From IMG/VR virus record IMGVR_UViG_3300023278_002893, positions 186,001 to 250,000 of that record: a stretch of DNA of 64,000 nt; one strand, written 5' to 3'. The stretch's first letter is position 1, and each line of letters opens with the position of its first letter. The notes under the pieces are model-generated. The model was not told the origin of the DNA and ran no database searches. It was given only the letters and a program-made list of their open reading frames with translations. The position numbers and the translations under genes are program-made. Below are positions 1,810 to 17,686 of this stretch, in pieces.

Positions 1810-2145
1810 TTATTCAGACTTTCTTGTAAAAATCAGCTGATCTTTTGTTATTTTAAATTCACCAATACTCGCTACAGCCTTCGATAAGAAGACAATAGTA
1901 TCTTGCCTATTAAGAAGCTCAACGGCTTGCTCAACGGCACGTTCCCGATCATCGCCGGCATCCACTATAGTAGGGCCAGATCCGACGAGTAAAAGAAAAC
2001 CAGAAGCTTTCTTGCGGTCAGCCATAGGATTTAACTCGTGAGCTTTCCTAAATGCGTCTATTTTGTGTCTGAATCTTTCGACAGAGTTGTCGGAAATTAC
2101 GGAAGAAGCGTCAATTGACTGGCTGCTAATTACGAATTTTTTTTT
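1810..2145 (-). CDS. ORF probably expressed as a -1 frameshift extension of the prohead protease (track ORF 1810..2025)
   Basis: Frame is open from the A10 run (2137-2146) to 1810; ATG at 2025 lacks a clear RBS. Confidence 0.55.
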   Translation of the reverse strand, partial: KKKFVISSQSIDASSVISDNSVERFRHKIDAFRKAHELNPMADRKKASGFLLLVGSGPTIVDAGDDRERAVEQAVELLNRQDTIVFLSKAVASIGEFKITKDQLIFTRKSE

Positions 2146-3545
2146 TCAGTCTCAATCACAAAATCCCTAAGAGAGTTTCGGAGAGACTGCGCCTCGTCAT
2201 GAAGTCGAACAATTTGATCTTGTCGTTCCGTTAGGGGCTCTACCGATGCGTCTACTTTATTAGTAACTGCGGGCAGAACAAGATCAGTGGTAAAACTATT
2301 ACCCGGTGTATTAGACAAGAATTCACGTACGGTCTTAGTAAATGCACCAGTGTCATCGGGGTTATTGGTCATAGAGTTTTTCTGATTTCGAAGACACTCG
2401 GGAGCTTTGGCGGTAGCACCAATAACAGGGCAGTGCTCCTCGAACAGAGCACAATAATGCTCCTGAATGACAGCACCTTCGGATTGATCTAGTGCGTTGT
2501 ACTTGGTCAGTCTCTTCTTGAAACTTACACAGGTACCGTCAATATTGCTCCCCACATAACCTGGACCAGGAAGACCACCCCCACTCCAACGAGCGGCTAC
2601 TTCCTTATTAGGGCTAACCGTAAGTACTCTGCTGATTCCTCCGGTCTCCTCATCAAGCTCGAGATAAAGTTTAGGGGCATCTTCGTCCGTCTGAACTGTA
2701 GAAACCTCTACTAAATTATCTGCCATTTCGACCTCCTTGTCAACCTGGGTTTCCCCTGCGGTTTCAGAAAGTACTACTTTGTGTCCTCGGAGATTATCAA
2801 TCATTTCTAGATCCACAACCTGCTCTCCCTTCTCCATCTGCTCACGTCGAGCTGCTGTCTCCATGATGATAGAGTGGGGGTTTGCAGGATTCTTAACAAT
2901 ACCCATCCCACTAAAGGTAATATGTCGAAGAACCCGCGCGACCTGTCGGACACCCATCTCCCTATGACCCGCCATTACCTTTACAAAACCACCTACCAGC
3001 TCATCAGGATCATACCCCAACGCCTGGGCCTCGTCACGTGTGATGATAGTATTGCCGATCTTAATGTCGAAGTCTTTAAAGAAACACTCCATGCTAACCT
3101 TCCACGCGCCTGCAGAAATTTCCTCTGCATACTCGGGGAAGCGCATCTTGTGGATAACACCTGCTACTGCAATGTCCATATCCACACCATCCAGATCCTG
3201 GGAAGCTTTTTCATAATCTGCCATAACTACCAGAGGATCAAACTGGCTACCATCCTTATACATATAAGCACATTCATAGATATGGCCGATGACCTTATCT
3301 TCCTCATGCTCGATATCAATGGCTTTATGCACTACAGTGTTGTGTGCCTTCATCATCTCTGATGGCAAGAAATGTGCACCATTCTTGTTAGTCCCTGCCG
3401 AGACCAGACAAGAGCGCATATATTGAAGATCCTGCTGCTTTTCATCAGGAAAAGCGAGCACGGCAGCTTTCTCCATCGCAGCCTTCTCTACCTCCTGCTC
3501 CACCTCAATGGGTGCATATACTCTAATCTTATTCTCTTCGACCAT
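2130..3545 (-). CDS. Prohead (head maturation) protease-like protein
   Basis: NKNGAHF, IDIEH, WKVSMEC and FSGMGIVKNPA motifs typical of large-phage prohead proteases; between portal and scaffold. Confidence 0.7.
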   Translation of the reverse strand: MVEENKIRVYAPIEVEQEVEKAAMEKAAVLAFPDEKQQDLQYMRSCLVSAGTNKNGAHFLPSEMMKAHNTVVHKAIDIEHEEDKVIGHIYECAYMYKDGSQFDPLVVMADYEKASQDLDGVDMDIAVAGVIHKMRFPEYAEEISAGAWKVSMECFFKDFDIKIGNTIITRDEAQALGYDPDELVGGFVKVMAGHREMGVRQVARVLRHITFSGMGIVKNPANPHSIIMETAARREQMEKGEQVVDLEMIDNLRGHKVVLSETAGETQVDKEVEMADNLVEVSTVQTDEDAPKLYLELDEETGGISRVLTVSPNKEVAARWSGGGLPGPGYVGSNIDGTCVSFKKRLTKYNALDQSEGAVIQEHYCALFEEHCPVIGATAKAPECLRNQKNSMTNNPDDTGAFTKTVREFLSNTPGNSFTTDLVLPAVTNKVDASVEPLTERQDQIVRLHDEAQSLRNSLRDFVIETEKKNS

Positions 3546-3743: not shown

Positions 3744-3986
3744 TTAGTCTGAATTCCGTTTAAAGACCTTTATCAAAAGATCTATTGAATCGTCCAGTTT
3801 GTGAGCGAGCTCTTCATAGCGTTCTTTGCTCTCGGTCACATCACTGATTCTCTCACGGTAGAGAGTTAGCAACTGATCTTGTAACTTATTTTTTTCTTGA
3901 TAAAGATAATAAATAACACTACATAGTCCGACTCCTATTAGAGCAAAAAGACCATGCGCCTTAAATATTTCATTTAAGAGATCCAT
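3744..3986 (-). CDS. Small membrane protein (N-terminal TM helix + coiled coil; holin-like)
   Basis: HGLFALIGVGLCSVIYYLY hydrophobic segment; RBS AGGAGG. Confidence 0.5.
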   Translation of the reverse strand: MDLLNEIFKAHGLFALIGVGLCSVIYYLYQEKNKLQDQLLTLYRERISDVTESKERYEELAHKLDDSIDLLIKVFKRNSD

Positions 3987-4004
3987 AAGACTTCTGCCCT
4001 CCTA

Positions 4005-4262
4005 TTATGCTTGTGATATTGGGGATTCCGGCGCGCAAAGGCCTAAGTTATTTAAAATAAATCCCTCAGGGCACTCAAGAGTGCCTACCGGTTCAGCCCC
4101 CTCCACATTAGTAATAGGGATACAAGAACCCGATTTCGGATCAAAGACTTCCTCAGGTCTACACTGCGGATGGAACTCCTGAGGATCAGTTATCTGACTT
4201 TTGTCAGACCATCCTCTTAGGATTTTCCCAAGTTGGCCGCGATGATCTGGCGAGCATGCCAC
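4005..4262 (-). CDS. Cys-repeat ORF, probable -1 frameshift extension of 4217..6559
   Basis: Two further repeats (CRPEEVFDPKSGSC, CPEGFILNNLGLC); lies in the -1 frame after G GGA AAA. Confidence 0.6.
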   Translation of the reverse strand: MACSPDHRGQLGKILRGWSDKSQITDPQEFHPQCRPEEVFDPKSGSCIPITNVEGAEPVGTLECPEGFILNNLGLCAPESPISQA

Positions 4263-6559
4263 AAAAGATGTTCCTGAGCATCAGCGACTGCCTGGTCTGC
4301 ATACCCATCTATCTTAGACGACCTGGCCAATGCATTTCGCAATCTTGCAACATCCACAGATGCGGTATCGTAAGAATCCTCTACATCTGGGGTATGGTGC
4401 ATTAGATTACGTCGAGTATGTCCGACTAGGGAAGGAGGAAAAGCCTCGTTGGGTAGGTCCTTAGCGGCTACCTTGGACTTCTCCTTGTTTCCTTCCTCTG
4501 TCTCGTTTAGAATAACATCAAGAGCAGAGATTATCTTAGCAAGAGACATGTTACCCACAGTGTCTCCTACCGAGGCAGTGTTTCCTGGATTTTGAGGGCT
4601 GGAACCAGCAGGGCGACTTTTGTCCATGCTGTCCAGTGGGCGACAAATTTTATTCTTAGCATCCCAAATAGTGTCCTTAGGACAATCACTGGGGAGATTA
4701 AGTTTGCCAGCTGGAGCATCAACCAGTCCTTCTCTGTTTCCTGGGTTGGCATCAGCACTCTCATCTTCCGACTTACCCTTAAACGCACCCTTACGAGGCA
4801 TGCACTTTTTGGTAACAGGGTTCACGAACTGTCCCTCAGGACAACCAGGACCTCCCTTGTTACCCGGACCAGACGTGGTAGTCTGAGCCTCGTCCTCGGC
4901 GGACTTGGCTTTCTTCTTTTTCTTATTGTCTTTCTTGTCGTCTTTCTTATCTCCGTCTTTGCCCTTTTTCTTATCCAACATCTTCTGGATGAAGGGAGGT
5001 ATGAATGCATCTTCCTCACTGGACTTCGTATTCTTACTGGAGTCTAGAGGATCACAATCTTGCTTATCCGCATTCCAGATAGTACCCTTAGGGCAATCCT
5101 GAGGCAGTCTAGCAGGTCTTCCCTCAGGCAAGGGAGTGATGTCTCTCTTAGCTGCTTTGCTAGTATCCATTTCGATGCACTTACGTGCACCGAAGTTGTA
5201 CATCTGGCCGGGAGGACACTGGAAATTAACAGGGTCTCTTCGACCCTCAGGCTGAACAGCCTGCTCTGTCTTGACAGCATCGTAAAATCCCTGCACCTTA
5301 GAGCAATTCTTAGACTCGGAACTCCATTCCATTCCAGGAGGGCAGGGTCCTTGATTTACCTCAGAAGACTGCTCCTTCTCATAGGAAGACATCCTCGCCG
5401 CAACAATCTCCTCACGAATAGGACGCATTAGGTCATTGATTACTTCAGCAAAATCTAAAGAAGTTTCAGCCTTAGCAAAATTATTGACCTCAATCTCACA
5501 TGCCTTGGCACGTGCTAGAATCTTTCGTCTAAGTGATGCCTTCTCTGAGGAGGAGAGACCCTTCGCCTGGTTGAATCTGGACATCGCGTTTCTAACACGA
5601 GCGCAGGTGTCTAACGGAAACTTCCTCTTTCCAGGAACACCGAACGCACTGTCAGGCAGAGCATTACGCTGAGCGGATTTAATGGGCGCTGCAGACTCAT
5701 TACCTACCAAACTAGGAGAATCAACTGCGGTCGGGTCGTCGCCATACTCATAAACTTCCTGAGGAAGTGCGTGTCCAAAGTGCTGGGACTTATATCCCTT
5801 ACCAGAAAACTCCTCAACTATATAACCAGCTACATCGTGAGAATGTACCTCGTCCCCATAACCCTCGACGGAAGTCTTACCATTACCAGACGCATCTAGT
5901 GTTACTAGATGGGTGTGGCCGTGAAGGGGATCGGGGGAAGTCATAGCAACCTTACCACTCAGATAACGTGCCAGCTCCTGCTTCTCATCCTCAGTAAGTG
6001 CTGCGGATGACATCAGGGTGTCCTTGTTTAGAGGGATACACTGCCTAAGCTTAAAATCAAAAAGCTGCTTAGGGGGGCACTGGAAATTAACAGTGTCTCG
6101 GCGGCCCTCAGGATCCATATTAACAATCTCCTGATGTCCCCCAGTTCCTGGAGCAGCTGCTTCTTCTACTACATACTCGTTAGCCTCAGTCATTGCAAAC
6201 TCATCGCTAGTCTCAGACTCTGCTTCTTCCAGAGTAACACATCGTCTCTGGATAAAAGAAAAAGTCGTGCCCGCTGAGCACGACTCCGGTTCATCCATAT
6301 CATCTGCGTCAATTGCGACCTCGGTCTGGGACAGAACCTCCACAGACGCGGTACCTCGCCACTCAGGGCCGTGATCAACATTCACACTTCGGCTCTCCAA
6401 CGTGTGATCAATGCTGCCCATGGGAAGACATCGACCACTTGCAGGATCCTTACGATGTCCTTCGGGACAGTCTTCGTTCAACTCAATAGCGAACTCTCTC
6501 ATCTCTGTAAGAAAATCTAAAGGATTATTTCCCTCGTTTGATTTATTATTGTCGGTCAT
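4217..6559 (-). CDS. Head-module protein with eight C-x12-C repeats, a His-rich motif and two DUF6582-like segments
   Basis: Repeats such as CPEGHRKDPASGRC and CPKGTIWNADKQDC; HGHTH...HSHDV; LPDSAF..RKFPL..VRNAMSRF and LPNEAF..LRNALAR. Confidence 0.75.
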   Translation of the reverse strand: MTDNNKSNEGNNPLDFLTEMREFAIELNEDCPEGHRKDPASGRCLPMGSIDHTLESRSVNVDHGPEWRGTASVEVLSQTEVAIDADDMDEPESCSAGTTFSFIQRRCVTLEEAESETSDEFAMTEANEYVVEEAAAPGTGGHQEIVNMDPEGRRDTVNFQCPPKQLFDFKLRQCIPLNKDTLMSSAALTEDEKQELARYLSGKVAMTSPDPLHGHTHLVTLDASGNGKTSVEGYGDEVHSHDVAGYIVEEFSGKGYKSQHFGHALPQEVYEYGDDPTAVDSPSLVGNESAAPIKSAQRNALPDSAFGVPGKRKFPLDTCARVRNAMSRFNQAKGLSSSEKASLRRKILARAKACEIEVNNFAKAETSLDFAEVINDLMRPIREEIVAARMSSYEKEQSSEVNQGPCPPGMEWSSESKNCSKVQGFYDAVKTEQAVQPEGRRDPVNFQCPPGQMYNFGARKCIEMDTSKAAKRDITPLPEGRPARLPQDCPKGTIWNADKQDCDPLDSSKNTKSSEEDAFIPPFIQKMLDKKKGKDGDKKDDKKDNKKKKKAKSAEDEAQTTTSGPGNKGGPGCPEGQFVNPVTKKCMPRKGAFKGKSEDESADANPGNREGLVDAPAGKLNLPSDCPKDTIWDAKNKICRPLDSMDKSRPAGSSPQNPGNTASVGDTVGNMSLAKIISALDVILNETEEGNKEKSKVAAKDLPNEAFPPSLVGHTRRNLMHHTPDVEDSYDTASVDVARLRNALARSSKIDGYADQAVADAQEHLLWHARQIIAANLGKS

Positions 6560-6576: not shown

Positions 6577-8454
6577 TTAACTAGATTTACTTGGCTTTGT
6601 TGGTTTTGTGTTTGGTTTTGTAGATTTAGCTCGGGGCTTACCCCGTCCCTTTCGAGGCCGACCCTCGCTCGGAGTTCCCGTAGGGGTTCTCTGAATGTTC
6701 TGAATATTCTTCTGCAGGGATTGGATCTGATCTTGCATGTTTTTCTGGAAATCTTTAAGATCATCTTCTGTAACTGTAGTAGGCTTACCCCCCGGAGTAC
6801 CATCGCTCGTAGGTGCAACAGCCCCGGGTGCAACCTTGGGGTTGTACGGAGATCCAATAATGCCCAGAACTCCTGCTTGAACTGCGGGCGACTCCTGGAG
6901 CATGTTAGCATACTCGTTAGAGAAGTCGAAACCAAGCTTCTCAATACCGGTTTCATAAGAAATGATTCTTCGATCAATCATACCCTGGATGACGCTCATT
7001 AACATAATCTCATCCTTCAGAGTGTTCTCATCGAACCTAACCTTGGGATAACGATCGAAGCCCATTGCAAGTGCAACCTCTTCGTATTCGTGATCTATCC
7101 AACGTGTAACCACACGCCGGGCGTAATTAATCTCCTCAGCAAATGCCTTAGTGGCTGCCTCTATTGCCTTTGCGTTACCTGAAACCTCACCATCAATAAG
7201 GGCCCTAGTGACTCCCATGGACTGGCTTAGATCATCATTGACTTGTTCGAATTTACTCTGTCCTAGAATATTGTCAATCTCGGGAAAGGTGATCTTCTCT
7301 ACCTCCAGGGTGTGGTTCCACACGACATCAAAACTCTTACTAGAAGTATCGAACAACTGAGCGATTGCTTCTAACTGGGACTGATCAGTAACCGGATGCT
7401 CATCATTACCAATAGTTATCTTAAGAATATAGTTTGTAATTCCATCCAAGGTGGAGAAATCTGCCTTCTTTAATTCTTCCTTGTAGCGAATATCATCCAA
7501 AGCCCTAGAAAGCTTAGGCTTGGGGTACCGCTCATAATCCTGACGTCGATAATCACACTTTCCTACCAACTCCGGTGGAAGCAGCACAGGTTTGTCCTTC
7601 TTTACCTGATCTTTAAGTTCTTTAGGTAGGCTGTTAAGAAAAGCCTTCTGCTCTTTAGTCAGCTTAGAAGTATTCTTAAGCATTTTTTTCAACTCTTTGA
7701 AAGCTTGAGGCTTAAGTAGAGTTTCTGTCTGGTTAAATAACAAAGGACCTTGGATAACTACTAATCTAGGATCTAGAATTGTGTATTGTAAGGGTATAAA
7801 AGCCTTAGACCATATTTTCTTAGCAGCGCCCCATTCCGTATGTGCTTGTAATTTCTGTAGATCAGAGGTAGTTGAGAACATATTAGCTTTGGCTACGCGC
7901 TTGATCGTCTTATCAAAATCTTCTGGCTTCAACTTAGGCGCAAACTTACCCGCAATCTTGAAGGTCCTTACAAGTCCTACTCTAAAGAAGTCAAAGAATA
8001 TCTTCTCAACAGTTTCATGGAATCCAATCTCCCTAGTCCATGTATCATAAAAAAGTTTAATGGCGGGATCATCTATATCATTCTTAAAGCCCTTCGCGGC
8101 AAAGTTGGTTAGTGTGTCAATGACGGTGCCGATGTGTCCTTGAGAATGATAGGTATTAATTGCTGTATCGTAAAGCTGCTCGGGTCGTGCCTGTGTTACT
8201 TGCGGCTTACCAATAAGTAGATCAACATCTACACGTCGAAGCCAATCTCGAGAAATATTACGACCGCCCGTCCAAAACTTCATAGGATGTGGGTCTCCGT
8301 CTTTTCCTGTAAGAAACGCTAACTCCTTAACACCCCTACCCTCGGGACCAACATCAATCTCCATGGAATGAGAACCATCACCATTATCCTCATAGGAGAG
8401 AACTTCAGCATTTTCTAGACCCGCATTAAGCTTCTCTTTAACATCGTCGGACAT
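6577..8454 (-). CDS. Portal protein
   Basis: 625 aa immediately downstream of TerL; low-complexity C-terminus with GRP; size and position typical. Confidence 0.75.
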   Translation of the reverse strand: MSDDVKEKLNAGLENAEVLSYEDNGDGSHSMEIDVGPEGRGVKELAFLTGKDGDPHPMKFWTGGRNISRDWLRRVDVDLLIGKPQVTQARPEQLYDTAINTYHSQGHIGTVIDTLTNFAAKGFKNDIDDPAIKLFYDTWTREIGFHETVEKIFFDFFRVGLVRTFKIAGKFAPKLKPEDFDKTIKRVAKANMFSTTSDLQKLQAHTEWGAAKKIWSKAFIPLQYTILDPRLVVIQGPLLFNQTETLLKPQAFKELKKMLKNTSKLTKEQKAFLNSLPKELKDQVKKDKPVLLPPELVGKCDYRRQDYERYPKPKLSRALDDIRYKEELKKADFSTLDGITNYILKITIGNDEHPVTDQSQLEAIAQLFDTSSKSFDVVWNHTLEVEKITFPEIDNILGQSKFEQVNDDLSQSMGVTRALIDGEVSGNAKAIEAATKAFAEEINYARRVVTRWIDHEYEEVALAMGFDRYPKVRFDENTLKDEIMLMSVIQGMIDRRIISYETGIEKLGFDFSNEYANMLQESPAVQAGVLGIIGSPYNPKVAPGAVAPTSDGTPGGKPTTVTEDDLKDFQKNMQDQIQSLQKNIQNIQRTPTGTPSEGRPRKGRGKPRAKSTKPNTKPTKPSKSS

Positions 8455-10299
8455 TTATCTCCCCTTCTTCTTCTTCGGCTTAGGTTTCAAAACTGCGGCT
8501 CCGCTTAGACGTACCTTCTTATCGTTCCCCGCCTCTGACATAACTCTTCTCTTGAAGGCATCGGGATCACGGGCTATTTCCATCTTATCCATTATAGCCT
8601 GAGGAATAACTCCTCCAAAAGCATCTTCCATCTCTAAGGATTCTTTATCGCGGCTTCGACCACGTACCACCCCTCCGTGGTGCATGATGTCCTCTGGCAT
8701 ATCCTCTGTCCAGATCAAATCATAAATACAACGAGCTGCTAGAAAAAAAGCGGTGTAAAGATCCTTCTTCTGCTTCCCGTGACCTCCACCTTTAGGAACA
8801 TCGAAATGCTGTTTTCCAGTAGGAGTCTCAGTAAGCTCGATAGATTGCATCTGGTTCTTCATATCCCTAATCGTGTGCCAAGAGTCCTCTTCAGGAATGG
8901 TACCGTCCGTTAATGCTTTCAGTTTTTCACTCTGGGGAACCGATGGGAATAGAATGTCTCGATGCTCTAGTAACCGTAAAGCGTCGTAATTAGATTCCGC
9001 AATGAACTCAGCAGAAAAATTGCACATCGTTAGCATATCACGACCTGCTTTTAACTGGTGAACCTCATCCTCGGGATCAAGTATGGGACCTGCTGTATGG
9101 TTGGTGGGATTCTCTGCAAGAATGTCTTTGATGGCGAGGCCGCCACCCTGGGAATCCATATAGATATGGGTAACATTGAATGCTGAGCAAAGGTCTTCGA
9201 TGGTTTGGGCCATCTTGGGAAAGGGTTGATTATGAATTTCTAATGCGTGAACGACTTTAGCGGGCTGTCCAATCTCTACAACCGCAATGGCAAAAGAGTC
9301 TTCACTTCTAGCAGGATCTATACCTAAACAATAAGACTTACCGGGAGATCCCGCAACCTGAGTTGAGAAAGATTTACTACTACATGCTTCCAACAGCGAC
9401 GCTCTGTAAAAAGCATCTGTGTCGGGAATAAAAGCAGCCTCGTATTCCATCCGGAACTCAAGGCTAGACATTTCTTTTCTTGCGGACTCAACGTTATCTT
9501 TATCGAGGAATCCGGTCTCTAGTAATTTATACGGAACTCTAAAAGCTGCGTACTTAGGATTACCTGCACGCATCTCATCACGGTAGATCTTGTACAGATC
9601 ATACATGTGATTAAAAGTGAAATAACCAGATGATGTAATTATAATTTGGTTGGCGCTGCTGTCAGCGTCCAGCTCCTCTTGGGTGATCAACCCACGCTTA
9701 AGAAGCTCCTTCTGCCTTTTGATCCTCTCTACATTCTCCATAGGATTGGCTACGGTAGCTGCCATAGGACGAATGACCATGTTAAAAATCTCGGGTGGAA
9801 TGTGGGGAAACTCATCACAAACAATAGTAAAGAAACGTGAACCACGAATCTTAGTACCGTCGCCTAGAGGTATCGCTTGTATTAACGACCCCGGCTTACC
9901 CGCCACTGACTTAAATCTAATATAACAATTGTCTGATTGCTGGGTAGGTTTCTTCTCACACGCAGCTCGTAGGATCGGAGACCCTTGATACAAGCGCGTG
10001 CACTCATCAAAAATAAACTTAGATTGACGAAAAGTGGGTGCAATTAATCCTATCTTGTGTCCTGGATACAACATCCCTTTCAGTACAGCAAGCACAGCTT
10101 GGAGAAATGTTTTACCTGAACCACGACACATAATGGCGATGACGTTGCTCTTAGACCACATAGAGCGCAAGACTACTTTTTGGATTTTTGAAAGCTTGAG
10201 TCCCAATAGGTCTTCTGCTGCCATCTCGGGATATTCTCTATAGAACTCAATCAGCTCTGCTGCAGCTGATCTTAATTCCGGATCATCTTCGTTTAGCAT
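8455..10299 (-). CDS. terL: Terminase large subunit
   Basis: Walker A CRGSGKT, IRGSR, Walker B IVCDE, coupling ITSSG, nuclease LGIDPA and KKDLY. Confidence 0.93.
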   Translation of the reverse strand: MLNEDDPELRSAAAELIEFYREYPEMAAEDLLGLKLSKIQKVVLRSMWSKSNVIAIMCRGSGKTFLQAVLAVLKGMLYPGHKIGLIAPTFRQSKFIFDECTRLYQGSPILRAACEKKPTQQSDNCYIRFKSVAGKPGSLIQAIPLGDGTKIRGSRFFTIVCDEFPHIPPEIFNMVIRPMAATVANPMENVERIKRQKELLKRGLITQEELDADSSANQIIITSSGYFTFNHMYDLYKIYRDEMRAGNPKYAAFRVPYKLLETGFLDKDNVESARKEMSSLEFRMEYEAAFIPDTDAFYRASLLEACSSKSFSTQVAGSPGKSYCLGIDPARSEDSFAIAVVEIGQPAKVVHALEIHNQPFPKMAQTIEDLCSAFNVTHIYMDSQGGGLAIKDILAENPTNHTAGPILDPEDEVHQLKAGRDMLTMCNFSAEFIAESNYDALRLLEHRDILFPSVPQSEKLKALTDGTIPEEDSWHTIRDMKNQMQSIELTETPTGKQHFDVPKGGGHGKQKKDLYTAFFLAARCIYDLIWTEDMPEDIMHHGGVVRGRSRDKESLEMEDAFGGVIPQAIMDKMEIARDPDAFKRRVMSEAGNDKKVRLSGAAVLKPKPKKKKGR

Positions 10300-17122: not shown

Positions 17123-17686
17123 TTAAATATTGTCTTTTTTTATTAGATTGTCTTTTGCCCAAAGAGGCTGAAGGTTAGTATAATGTACCGCCTTCAAAAA
17201 ATCACCCCTATCAGACAGGTCAAAAGATGCCAAAGGTTTAACATGGTCTATATGCCACTCACCGTGGTTATTCCATGACATCCCCGGTTGGAACTTGGAT
17301 TCTAAATGATGTCTTAGAGTTTGTAAAGAACATCCCAAATCTTTCATGGCCGAACCGTTACGTCCAAAACGTAAGGAATTGACTACTCTACTTCTTAAAA
17401 GGCAGCGTATTTTAAAATCTAAATCCTTATGGTATCTGTTCTTTTTATATTCACGGTAATATCTACGCTGTTGGTCTTTGTGAGATTGCCGATATTGTTT
17501 TCTATAAACACTCAACTTCTCCCTATTCCCAGTAGCGTATAATTTGGCGTATTCTAATCTATCTACTTTATTTTTATTGTAGTACTCCTTAAAACAAGAC
17601 TTGCATCTAGGTGTGGGTTTATCTTTTGTCTGGTAAAAATCAGAAATATTTTTGGTTTTACCGCACCCGTTACAAAACTTGGTCAT
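17123..17686 (-). CDS. HNH homing endonuclease (WHIDH...HYTNLQPLW type)
   Basis: CxxC N-terminus; NHGEWHIDHVKPLASFDL...HYTNLQPLWAKDN. Confidence 0.85.
   Translation of the reverse strand: MTKFCNGCGKTKNISDFYQTKDKPTPRCKSCFKEYYNKNKVDRLEYAKLYATGNREKLSVYRKQYRQSHKDQQRRYYREYKKNRYHKDLDFKIRCLLRSRVVNSLRFGRNGSAMKDLGCSLQTLRHHLESKFQPGMSWNNHGEWHIDHVKPLASFDLSDRGDFLKAVHYTNLQPLWAKDNLIKKDNI

Follow-up and report, generated by a model that had tools for sequence, protein, structure and literature searches.

Frameshifting at the 3′ end of a phage structural gene is already a familiar kind of event, and the mechanism itself is not new. Lambda G/GT uses the heptamer G_GGA_AAG near the end of the upstream open-reading frame, an arrangement conserved across many phages, T7 uses G_GUU_UUC together with a distant 3′ element, and Lactobacillus phage A2 has two sites in one phage, in its major head protein and its major tail protein, with a stem-loop after the site. 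In T7 and T3 the −1 slippage near the end of the head gene (10A/10B) gives a minor, longer component of the capsid (PMC5009743), and −1/+1 frameshifts at the 3′ end of structural genes are described for A2 (gp5A/5B, tail) and for the Listeria phages A118, A500 and PSA (PMC5009743; PMC5221750). Ig-like domains are added to phage structural proteins in frame or by frameshift, according to the passage of PMC5009743 that cites Fraser et al. 2006, and in pea enation mosaic virus (PEMV) a stop 3 nt past the shift site is needed for efficient shifting (PMC5009743).

The locus described here lies in the window, the 64,000-nucleotide stretch of DNA that was analysed, which comprises bases 186001-250000 of a 297,725-bp record rated complete by CheckV. 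What is new is the gene family, the phage group (uncultured marine-sediment jumbo phages), the modules added and the breadth of the conservation. The gene order is TerL, portal, a 780-aa gene, two small ORFs and a protease-like gene, all on the minus strand, with the following coordinates for the neighbours of the 780-aa gene:

10299..8455, minus strand: terminase large subunit (phrog_2, E 1.7e-28; Terminase_6C)
8454..6577, minus strand: portal protein, Mu-like (feature score 0.97; TM 0.68 to portal clusters)
3545..2130, minus strand: 471-aa probable prohead protease, at residues about 37-226, with a long C-terminal part

The 780-aa gene itself ends GCC AAC TTG GGA AAA TCC TAA on the minus strand, and comprises:

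6559..4217, minus strand: 0-frame gene of 780 aa
4229..4223, minus strand: slippery heptamer G_GGA_AAA in the X_XXY_YYZ register, with GGA as P-site and AAA as A-site codon
4219..4217, minus strand: 0-frame stop TAA, exactly one codon past the heptamer
4229..4005, minus strand: −1 extension, consisting of the site Gly and Lys, 72 new residues and a stop, with two Cys loops

The in-frame heptamer ahead of TCC TAA had been noticed in the original prediction, made from the sequence alone, and was recovered at 4223-4229 on the minus strand. Translation in the −1 frame from 4229 starts GKILRGWSDK and meets no stop until 4007..4005, a length of 74 codons with the site's Gly and Lys included; the +1 frame closes 13 nt after the site. 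The predicted transframe product has 851 aa, with its junction between ANLGK and ILRGW. Readthrough of the stop codon was considered and rejected, as the next 0-frame stop follows nine codons on and the conserved peptide lies in the −1 frame. Judged by sequence comparison, we give a probability of roughly 0.88 to the reading that this gene closes with a genuine cassette for programmed −1 ribosomal frameshifting. The recoding originally proposed, a −1 slip at G_GGA_AAA that would add two Cys loops, is strongly supported because the heptamer is conserved at synonymous sites, the −1 ORF is under purifying selection and a start codon for that ORF is absent in most relatives.

Compared with the described systems, the locus combines features of several. 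As in T7 and T3 10A/10B, a −1 slip near the end of a head gene would give a longer product, here predicted from the sequence; those phages differ in the heptamer (G_GUU_UUC), in the distant 3′ element and in an extension that is unrelated to Cys loops. The A2 and Listeria systems have what is predicted here, a short and a C-terminally extended form, two sites in one morphogenesis module and a stem-loop after the site, but the genes in those small siphoviruses encode the major capsid and the tail proteins, with products shown biochemically, whereas here a portal-adjacent modular protein and a protease-like gene of a 298-kb uncultured phage are involved and the evidence is all comparative. The likeness to the Ig-like domains lies in a small, mobile, beta-rich module that is added in either way: eight Cys loops are encoded in frame and two in the extension, and a ferritin-like domain is also found both ways in the family. 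Instead of Ig folds, however, the modules are two-Cys hairpins, a small helical module with two Cys and a ferritin/Dps-like domain. The heptamer of lambda G/GT is nearly identical (G_GGA_AAA here), likewise stands close to the end of its upstream ORF and is shared by many phages, but it lies in the tail module before the tape-measure gene, whereas the present site lies in the head module by the portal gene, and the two share no homology. dnaX likewise has an A-rich Lys heptamer, with a 3′ stem-loop of the kind predicted here, but its upstream Shine-Dalgarno-like element is not conserved in the present loci (25 of 66). The stop one codon past the heptamer recalls PEMV and, by analogy, may matter here too.

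Conservation of the heptamer in homologues, which the original prediction had put forward as a check on its claim, was found in nearly every related locus. A protein search returned 105 homologues, 35-80% identical, which bar a few fragments and distant DUF6582-only matches end at the same place (...LGK-x or ...KK-x), and the reading frame of none of the ~100 full-length homologues runs on into the Cys loops. DNA was collected for 88 loci from IMG/VR and metagenome contigs, the window's own contig included, and 67 of these are distinct around the stop (about 50-80% amino-acid identity, from independent metagenomes). The in-register heptamer is present in 66 of the 67 distinct loci, as A_AAA_AAA in 49 and as G_GGA_AAA in 17, and a recurrence of this extent shows that the arrangement is not due to chance; the one exception (L051) reads G_GTA_AAA_A and keeps A_AAA_A. 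On a tree of the C-terminal domain the type of heptamer changed 1-4 times, always as a tandem-slippery X_XXY_YYZ. An independent contig from an unrelated marine metagenome run of 2023 is ~87% identical over 3913-4294, has no indel and shows no listed change within 4217-4229; two marine runs hold 5% of the sampled words, and this contig serves as an indel check only.

Codon choice at the site departs from that in the rest of these genes. Lysine is encoded by AAA in 21% of cases and by AAG in 79%, and Lys-Lys is written AAA-AAA in 7 of 650 pairs elsewhere versus 49 of 49 at the site. In the A_AAA_AAA type the preceding codon always ends in A (background 21%), and in the Leu-Gly-Lys type the Leu codon always ends in G (background 26%) and Gly is always GGA (background 29%). 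With disfavoured codons fixed at the site in this way, the slippery nucleotides are under selection beyond the amino-acid sequence that they encode. The distance to the stop is just as regular, with one codon between heptamer and stop in 64 of 66 loci and none in the other two (the XXY codon lying 3 or 2 codons before the stop), although the codon that fills this gap varies freely. This fixed spacing may be a functional part of the cassette, on the analogy of PEMV, or may reflect the mere avoidance of a junk tail.

Downstream of the heptamer, two pairings are predicted:

4216..4181, minus strand: predicted 3′ stimulatory stem-loop, GAGGAU (4216..4211) paired with AUCCUC (4186..4181) and enclosing UCUGAC-AAAA-GUCAGA (4208..4193)
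4214..4209 with 4173..4168, minus strand: alternative long-range pairing GGAUGG:CCAUCC, common to the 'SGW' subfamily of relatives

The most likely stimulator is the predicted composite, in which the GAGGAU:AUCCUC stem begins 6 nt past the heptamer and is stacked on the UCUGAC hairpin. Both of the small hairpins that had been pointed out originally are present, the TCTGAC one at 4208..4193, but the ATCCT/AGGAT hairpin is a less likely stimulator, since it lies directly against the heptamer, where a ribosome on the site would melt it. The 82 nt from the heptamer onwards fold with an MFE of −29.7 kcal/mol (z −3.85), which makes them more stable than any of 200 dinucleotide shuffles, and in the 2023 contig (run X2) C4203 is changed to U with a G-U pair kept. 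Pairings of the GGAUGG:CCAUCC type have 6-9 bp, with 93% of cells paired and little covariation. A subfamily stem AGCGGRUGG:YCAUCCGCU follows a spacer of 5-6 nt, another subfamily has the stem GCACUGAGGG:CCCUCAGUGC after a spacer of 6 nt, with a covariation score that is reached in 1 of 500 shuffles, and a third has a GGGGAUC hairpin after 13 nt. Covariation within subfamilies is weak because most of the pairs are invariant coding positions. As a synonymous control the protein was kept and the codons were re-drawn; against this control the native sequence had the greater stability in 86% of loci, with a mean z of −1.07 over loci that are not phylogenetically independent. All 16 G_GGA_AAA loci, themselves phylogenetically related, have z <= −1.6 against the synonymous recodings (window −2.27), whereas the A_AAA_AAA loci are barely better than theirs, with z near −0.6 on average. 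Stronger structure may compensate for the less slippery heptamer G_GGA_AAA, a possible trade-off between slipperiness and structure.

The alternative that survives best is slippage of the RNA polymerase, which would add one A to some mRNAs at the A run, so that normal translation would give the long form. Runs of 7-8 A stand at the site in 49 of 66 relatives, the neighbouring protease gene has 9-10 A, and runs this long are known to cause transcriptional slippage (PMC5009743). However, the window and 16 other loci read GGGAAAA(T/G/A), with only 4-6 A, too short for efficiency, yet they obey the tandem-tRNA rule; the register of the motif to the 0 frame, which is relevant to ribosomes and not to the polymerase, is fixed in all loci, and the structure 3′ of the site stands at a ribosomal spacing. 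Because it is the tandem-tRNA rule in a fixed register that is conserved, and not the length of the run, the window site is best read as ribosomal slippage, and we regard polymerase slippage as an improbable explanation of it. Polymerase slippage may nevertheless contribute in the relatives with A runs, and more likely still at the neighbouring 9-10 A site.

This neighbouring site lies at the 3′ end of the 471-aa gene, which reads GAA AAA AAA AAT TCG TAA on the minus strand, with A_AAA_AAA 12 nt before the stop:

2145..1810, minus strand: second cassette, with A_AAA_AAA (2145..2139) in a run of ten A, then a 111-codon −1 extension

The A_AAA_AAA and a ~105-aa extension (KNFRIIS..IEAASVI..RFKHK..AFK) are conserved in about 45 loci, which at the level of sequence bears out the suggestion that two nearby head genes would both be recoded at their ends. 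The extension spans the 'ORF' 2025..1810, and no Shine-Dalgarno sequence precedes the ATG at 2025. As the A run is long enough, transcriptional slippage is a serious alternative at this second site. A well-supported recoding site with a second one two genes away is present in a large group of uncultured marine-sediment jumbo phages.

Returning to the 780-aa gene, a −1 ORF follows the heptamer in every locus with sequence available and the similarity begins at the slip site, with the conserved peptide ...GQITNPxEFHPxCRPEEVFDPKSGSCIP...GTLECPxG...C.PE. In the window's clade the extension has a pN/pS of 0.13-0.18 at a pS of about 0.55, as against >1 in the other frames of the same alignment, and by this measure the −1 ORF is under purifying selection. 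Such an ORF could also be a separate gene, with a start of its own at GTG 4262 or at some other codon and with the heptamer incidental, a caveat already attached to the original prediction. The codon concerned is:

4262..4260, minus strand: GTG in the −1 frame, a product of 0-frame TTG TGG (Leu-Trp) and not a conserved start

The window and its seven closest relatives have this GTG with an AGGA 9-13 nt upstream, but both lie inside conserved 0-frame codons for Gln-Glu-His-Leu-Leu-Trp, the AGGA being part of CAG GAA, and they are gone where Trp is replaced by Phe or Tyr. The GTG, at −43, is confined to the window's clade, other clades having Leu-Phe or Leu-Tyr, and the proposed independent start is therefore not conserved. 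Of the 65 complete loci, 45 have no ATG, GTG or TTG in the stretch from the preceding −1 stop to the first loop. In 15 loci a stop closes the −1 frame shortly ahead of the heptamer, no more than 16 nt from the 0-frame stop and in several cases immediately next to the A run. Furthermore, 35 of the 49 window genes start at ATG behind a clear Shine-Dalgarno sequence, and initiation of its own would leave the fixed, rare heptamer codons unexplained. A separate gene is accordingly a very unlikely account of the extension.

A homopolymer error of assembly or sequencing, or a recent inactivating frameshift mutation, in one continuous gene would look similar, in that a single additional A would join the two frames and encode an identical protein; however, the same two-frame layout is found in 65 independently assembled, very different loci and, without indels, in the unrelated 2023 run, the 0-frame stop one codon past the site is kept (64/66 loci), and as none of the ~100 full-length homologues is fused in frame there is no sign of assembly error in the window, so that we give this explanation almost no weight. 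Just as negligible is an untranslated −1 ORF, conserved as an RNA or DNA element only, given that only in the −1 frame are the great majority of substitutions synonymous, that the Cys spacing and the Pro/Gly positions are kept across ~50% divergence and that the same frame in relatives enters a bona fide ferritin-like domain (PF00210, E 1e-21).

Programmed −1 frameshifting, as the favoured reading, would append different modules in different phages. The extension consists of the two loops only in the window and three other loci among the 65 complete ones, whilst in 50 it runs on into a conserved ~45-residue module, KMERCIxxVK...KSxAIAICRSRLK, with two invariant Cys (e.g. L080:3861-4013), and in 9 it carries a Lys-rich or other tail. 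In L067 (3663-4547) and L052 (3933-4685) the extension ends in the ferritin/Dps-like domain (PF00210 E 1e-21; phrog_3636 'DNA binding protein'), and in the homologue P0069 a ferritin-like domain lies in frame inside the main protein (residues 504-643), which indicates that the modules move about. Frameshift mix-and-match of small modules, known for Ig-like domains, thereby extends to Cys-loop and ferritin-like modules. The KMERC...AIAICRSRL module had no match in Pfam, PHROG or PDB, and a search of the window's genome found neither this module nor a ferritin-like domain. The window's lineage appears to have lost the distal part of the extension, with the heptamer, the structure and the loops kept under selection; as the C-terminal module of 50/65 relatives is missing, the contribution of the extension in the window phage may be reduced.

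The loops of the extension resemble those of the main protein. The 780-aa protein has 18 cysteines, 16 of which form eight loops of the form C-P-x-G-x8-9-C-x-P, and the extension has HPQC-x12-C-IP and LEC-PEG-x8-C-AP. When a profile of the eight loops was searched against 5196 six-frame pieces (at least 30 aa) of the 297.7-kb genome, the extension was the best non-self match (E 0.0015, next best 0.29), in agreement with the two further Cys repeats that had been read in the −1 frame; the profile score comes mostly from the first loop, and the second fits with one residue less between its cysteines. Matches to the chitin-binding peritrophin-A family, CBM_14, were weak in the extension (E 0.016), and the 57.7 bits of the 780-aa protein are summed from partial matches at profile positions about 24-49. 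Membership of this family was rejected, since no single stretch passes and the units have two Cys each versus the six of the ~53-residue domain; by their sequence the Cys loops resemble part of CBM_14 and are not a member of it.

Elsewhere in the 780-aa protein, Pfam DUF6582 matches residues 302-359 (32.5 bits vs a cut-off of 27.3), a family without known function for which we found no paper that mentions it; the protein atlas returned DUF6582 clusters only, and the protein had no sequence match to solved PDB structures. An AlphaFold2 model (pLDDT 61, pTM 0.28) has a beads-on-a-string form with low-confidence linkers, in which each Cys loop is a beta hairpin. Residues about 200-265 form a His-rich beta domain, about 315-398 the helical DUF6582 domain and 714-779 a conserved, well predicted helical domain at the C terminus; the model had no fold match in PDB or BFVD. 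The small beta domain (window about 5765-5960), which is modelled with confidence, has nearly invariant H215, H217, H239, H241 and H260, which suggests a metal site.

Behind its Mu-like portal, the 780-aa gene occupies the position that MuF has in Mu and that the genes for the prohead core have in T4; neither domain is present in the 780-aa protein. A MuF-like minor head protein (PF04233) was rejected on a search that gave no Phage_Mu_F match in Pfam or PHROG. The name 'head protein' given in the original prediction agrees with a position in the head module, between a confirmed portal and a probable protease, and is a purely positional name, though a reasonable one. The low-confidence model of the 471-aa protein has as its best match the T4 gp21 prohead protease (5jbl, Z 7.3), followed by ~15 herpesvirus assemblins of the same fold (Z 3.5-4.5), and the sequence gives weak S78 hints; on the strength of the model, the protein probably combines a prohead protease with a long C-terminal part. 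This C-terminal part is largely disordered and has four invariant cysteines. Among GenBank phages megablast found no relatives of the phage, and tblastn returned only a ~60-aa DUF6582 match in a Streptomyces phage.

The signals, their conservation and the selection on the −1 ORF are observed, and from them we infer the slippage itself, its efficiency and the roles of the two forms. Most ribosomes would read ...Leu-Gly-Lys-Ser and terminate at TAA, which would yield the 780-aa protein. Some would slip while the P-site codon GGA is paired with tRNA-Gly and the A-site codon AAA with tRNA-Lys(UUU). The two tRNAs would then re-pair one base back, on GGG and AAA, and the slip would be aided by the stem-loop 6 nt downstream and possibly by the stop one codon ahead. 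The slipped ribosomes would read on through Ile-Leu-Arg-Gly-Trp... to give the 851-aa form, the same up to Lys779 and with 72 further residues that would form two Cys-loop hairpins. In E. coli data G_GGA_AAA shifts less than G_GGA_AAG, and E. coli may not resemble the host here. The phage has 29 tRNA genes, clustered at both genome ends and including Lys-UUU and Lys-CUU. As tRNA-Lys(CUU) is cognate for AAG, AAA is expected to be the shifty codon, which fits its exclusive use at the A-site; this reasoning on the shiftiness of AAA versus AAG comes from work on E. coli dnaX.

Our reading of the 780-aa product is that of a flexible, modular, prohead-associated protein, from the core or a minor head protein, with the frameshift setting the ratio of its short and extended forms. 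We also entertain, as a speculation that is more probably wrong than right by a wide measure, that the whole family acts as a flexible carrier in the prohead core, whose C-terminal modules (loops, two-Cys helical module, ferritin/Dps-like domain) would be dosed by frameshift, co-tuned with that in the adjacent protease/scaffold gene; if so, the ferritin/Dps-like extensions would put iron- or DNA-binding cargo in or on the capsid of a jumbo phage at a fixed ratio, in the manner of an encapsulin. Gene callers split the predicted product into the 780-aa protein and an orphan ORF, and all ~100 homologues in the databases are annotated without the extension. With two types of heptamer, several stems and a stop fixed one codon on, the loci also form a natural series for the study of shiftiness in non-model hosts.

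Two minor observations concern other parts of the genome. Outside the window, ARAGORN reported a tRNA at G000:C1:1116-1192 whose anticodon loop has eight bases and whose anticodon, 'ttca', has four (typed Glu|SeC); it could be an opal suppressor or frameshift-suppressor-like. Within it, a 187-aa gene (17123-17686, minus strand) carries A_AAA_AAA in register, 15 nt ahead of the stop, followed by only a 25-codon, low-complexity −1 continuation, and this heptamer is probably incidental.
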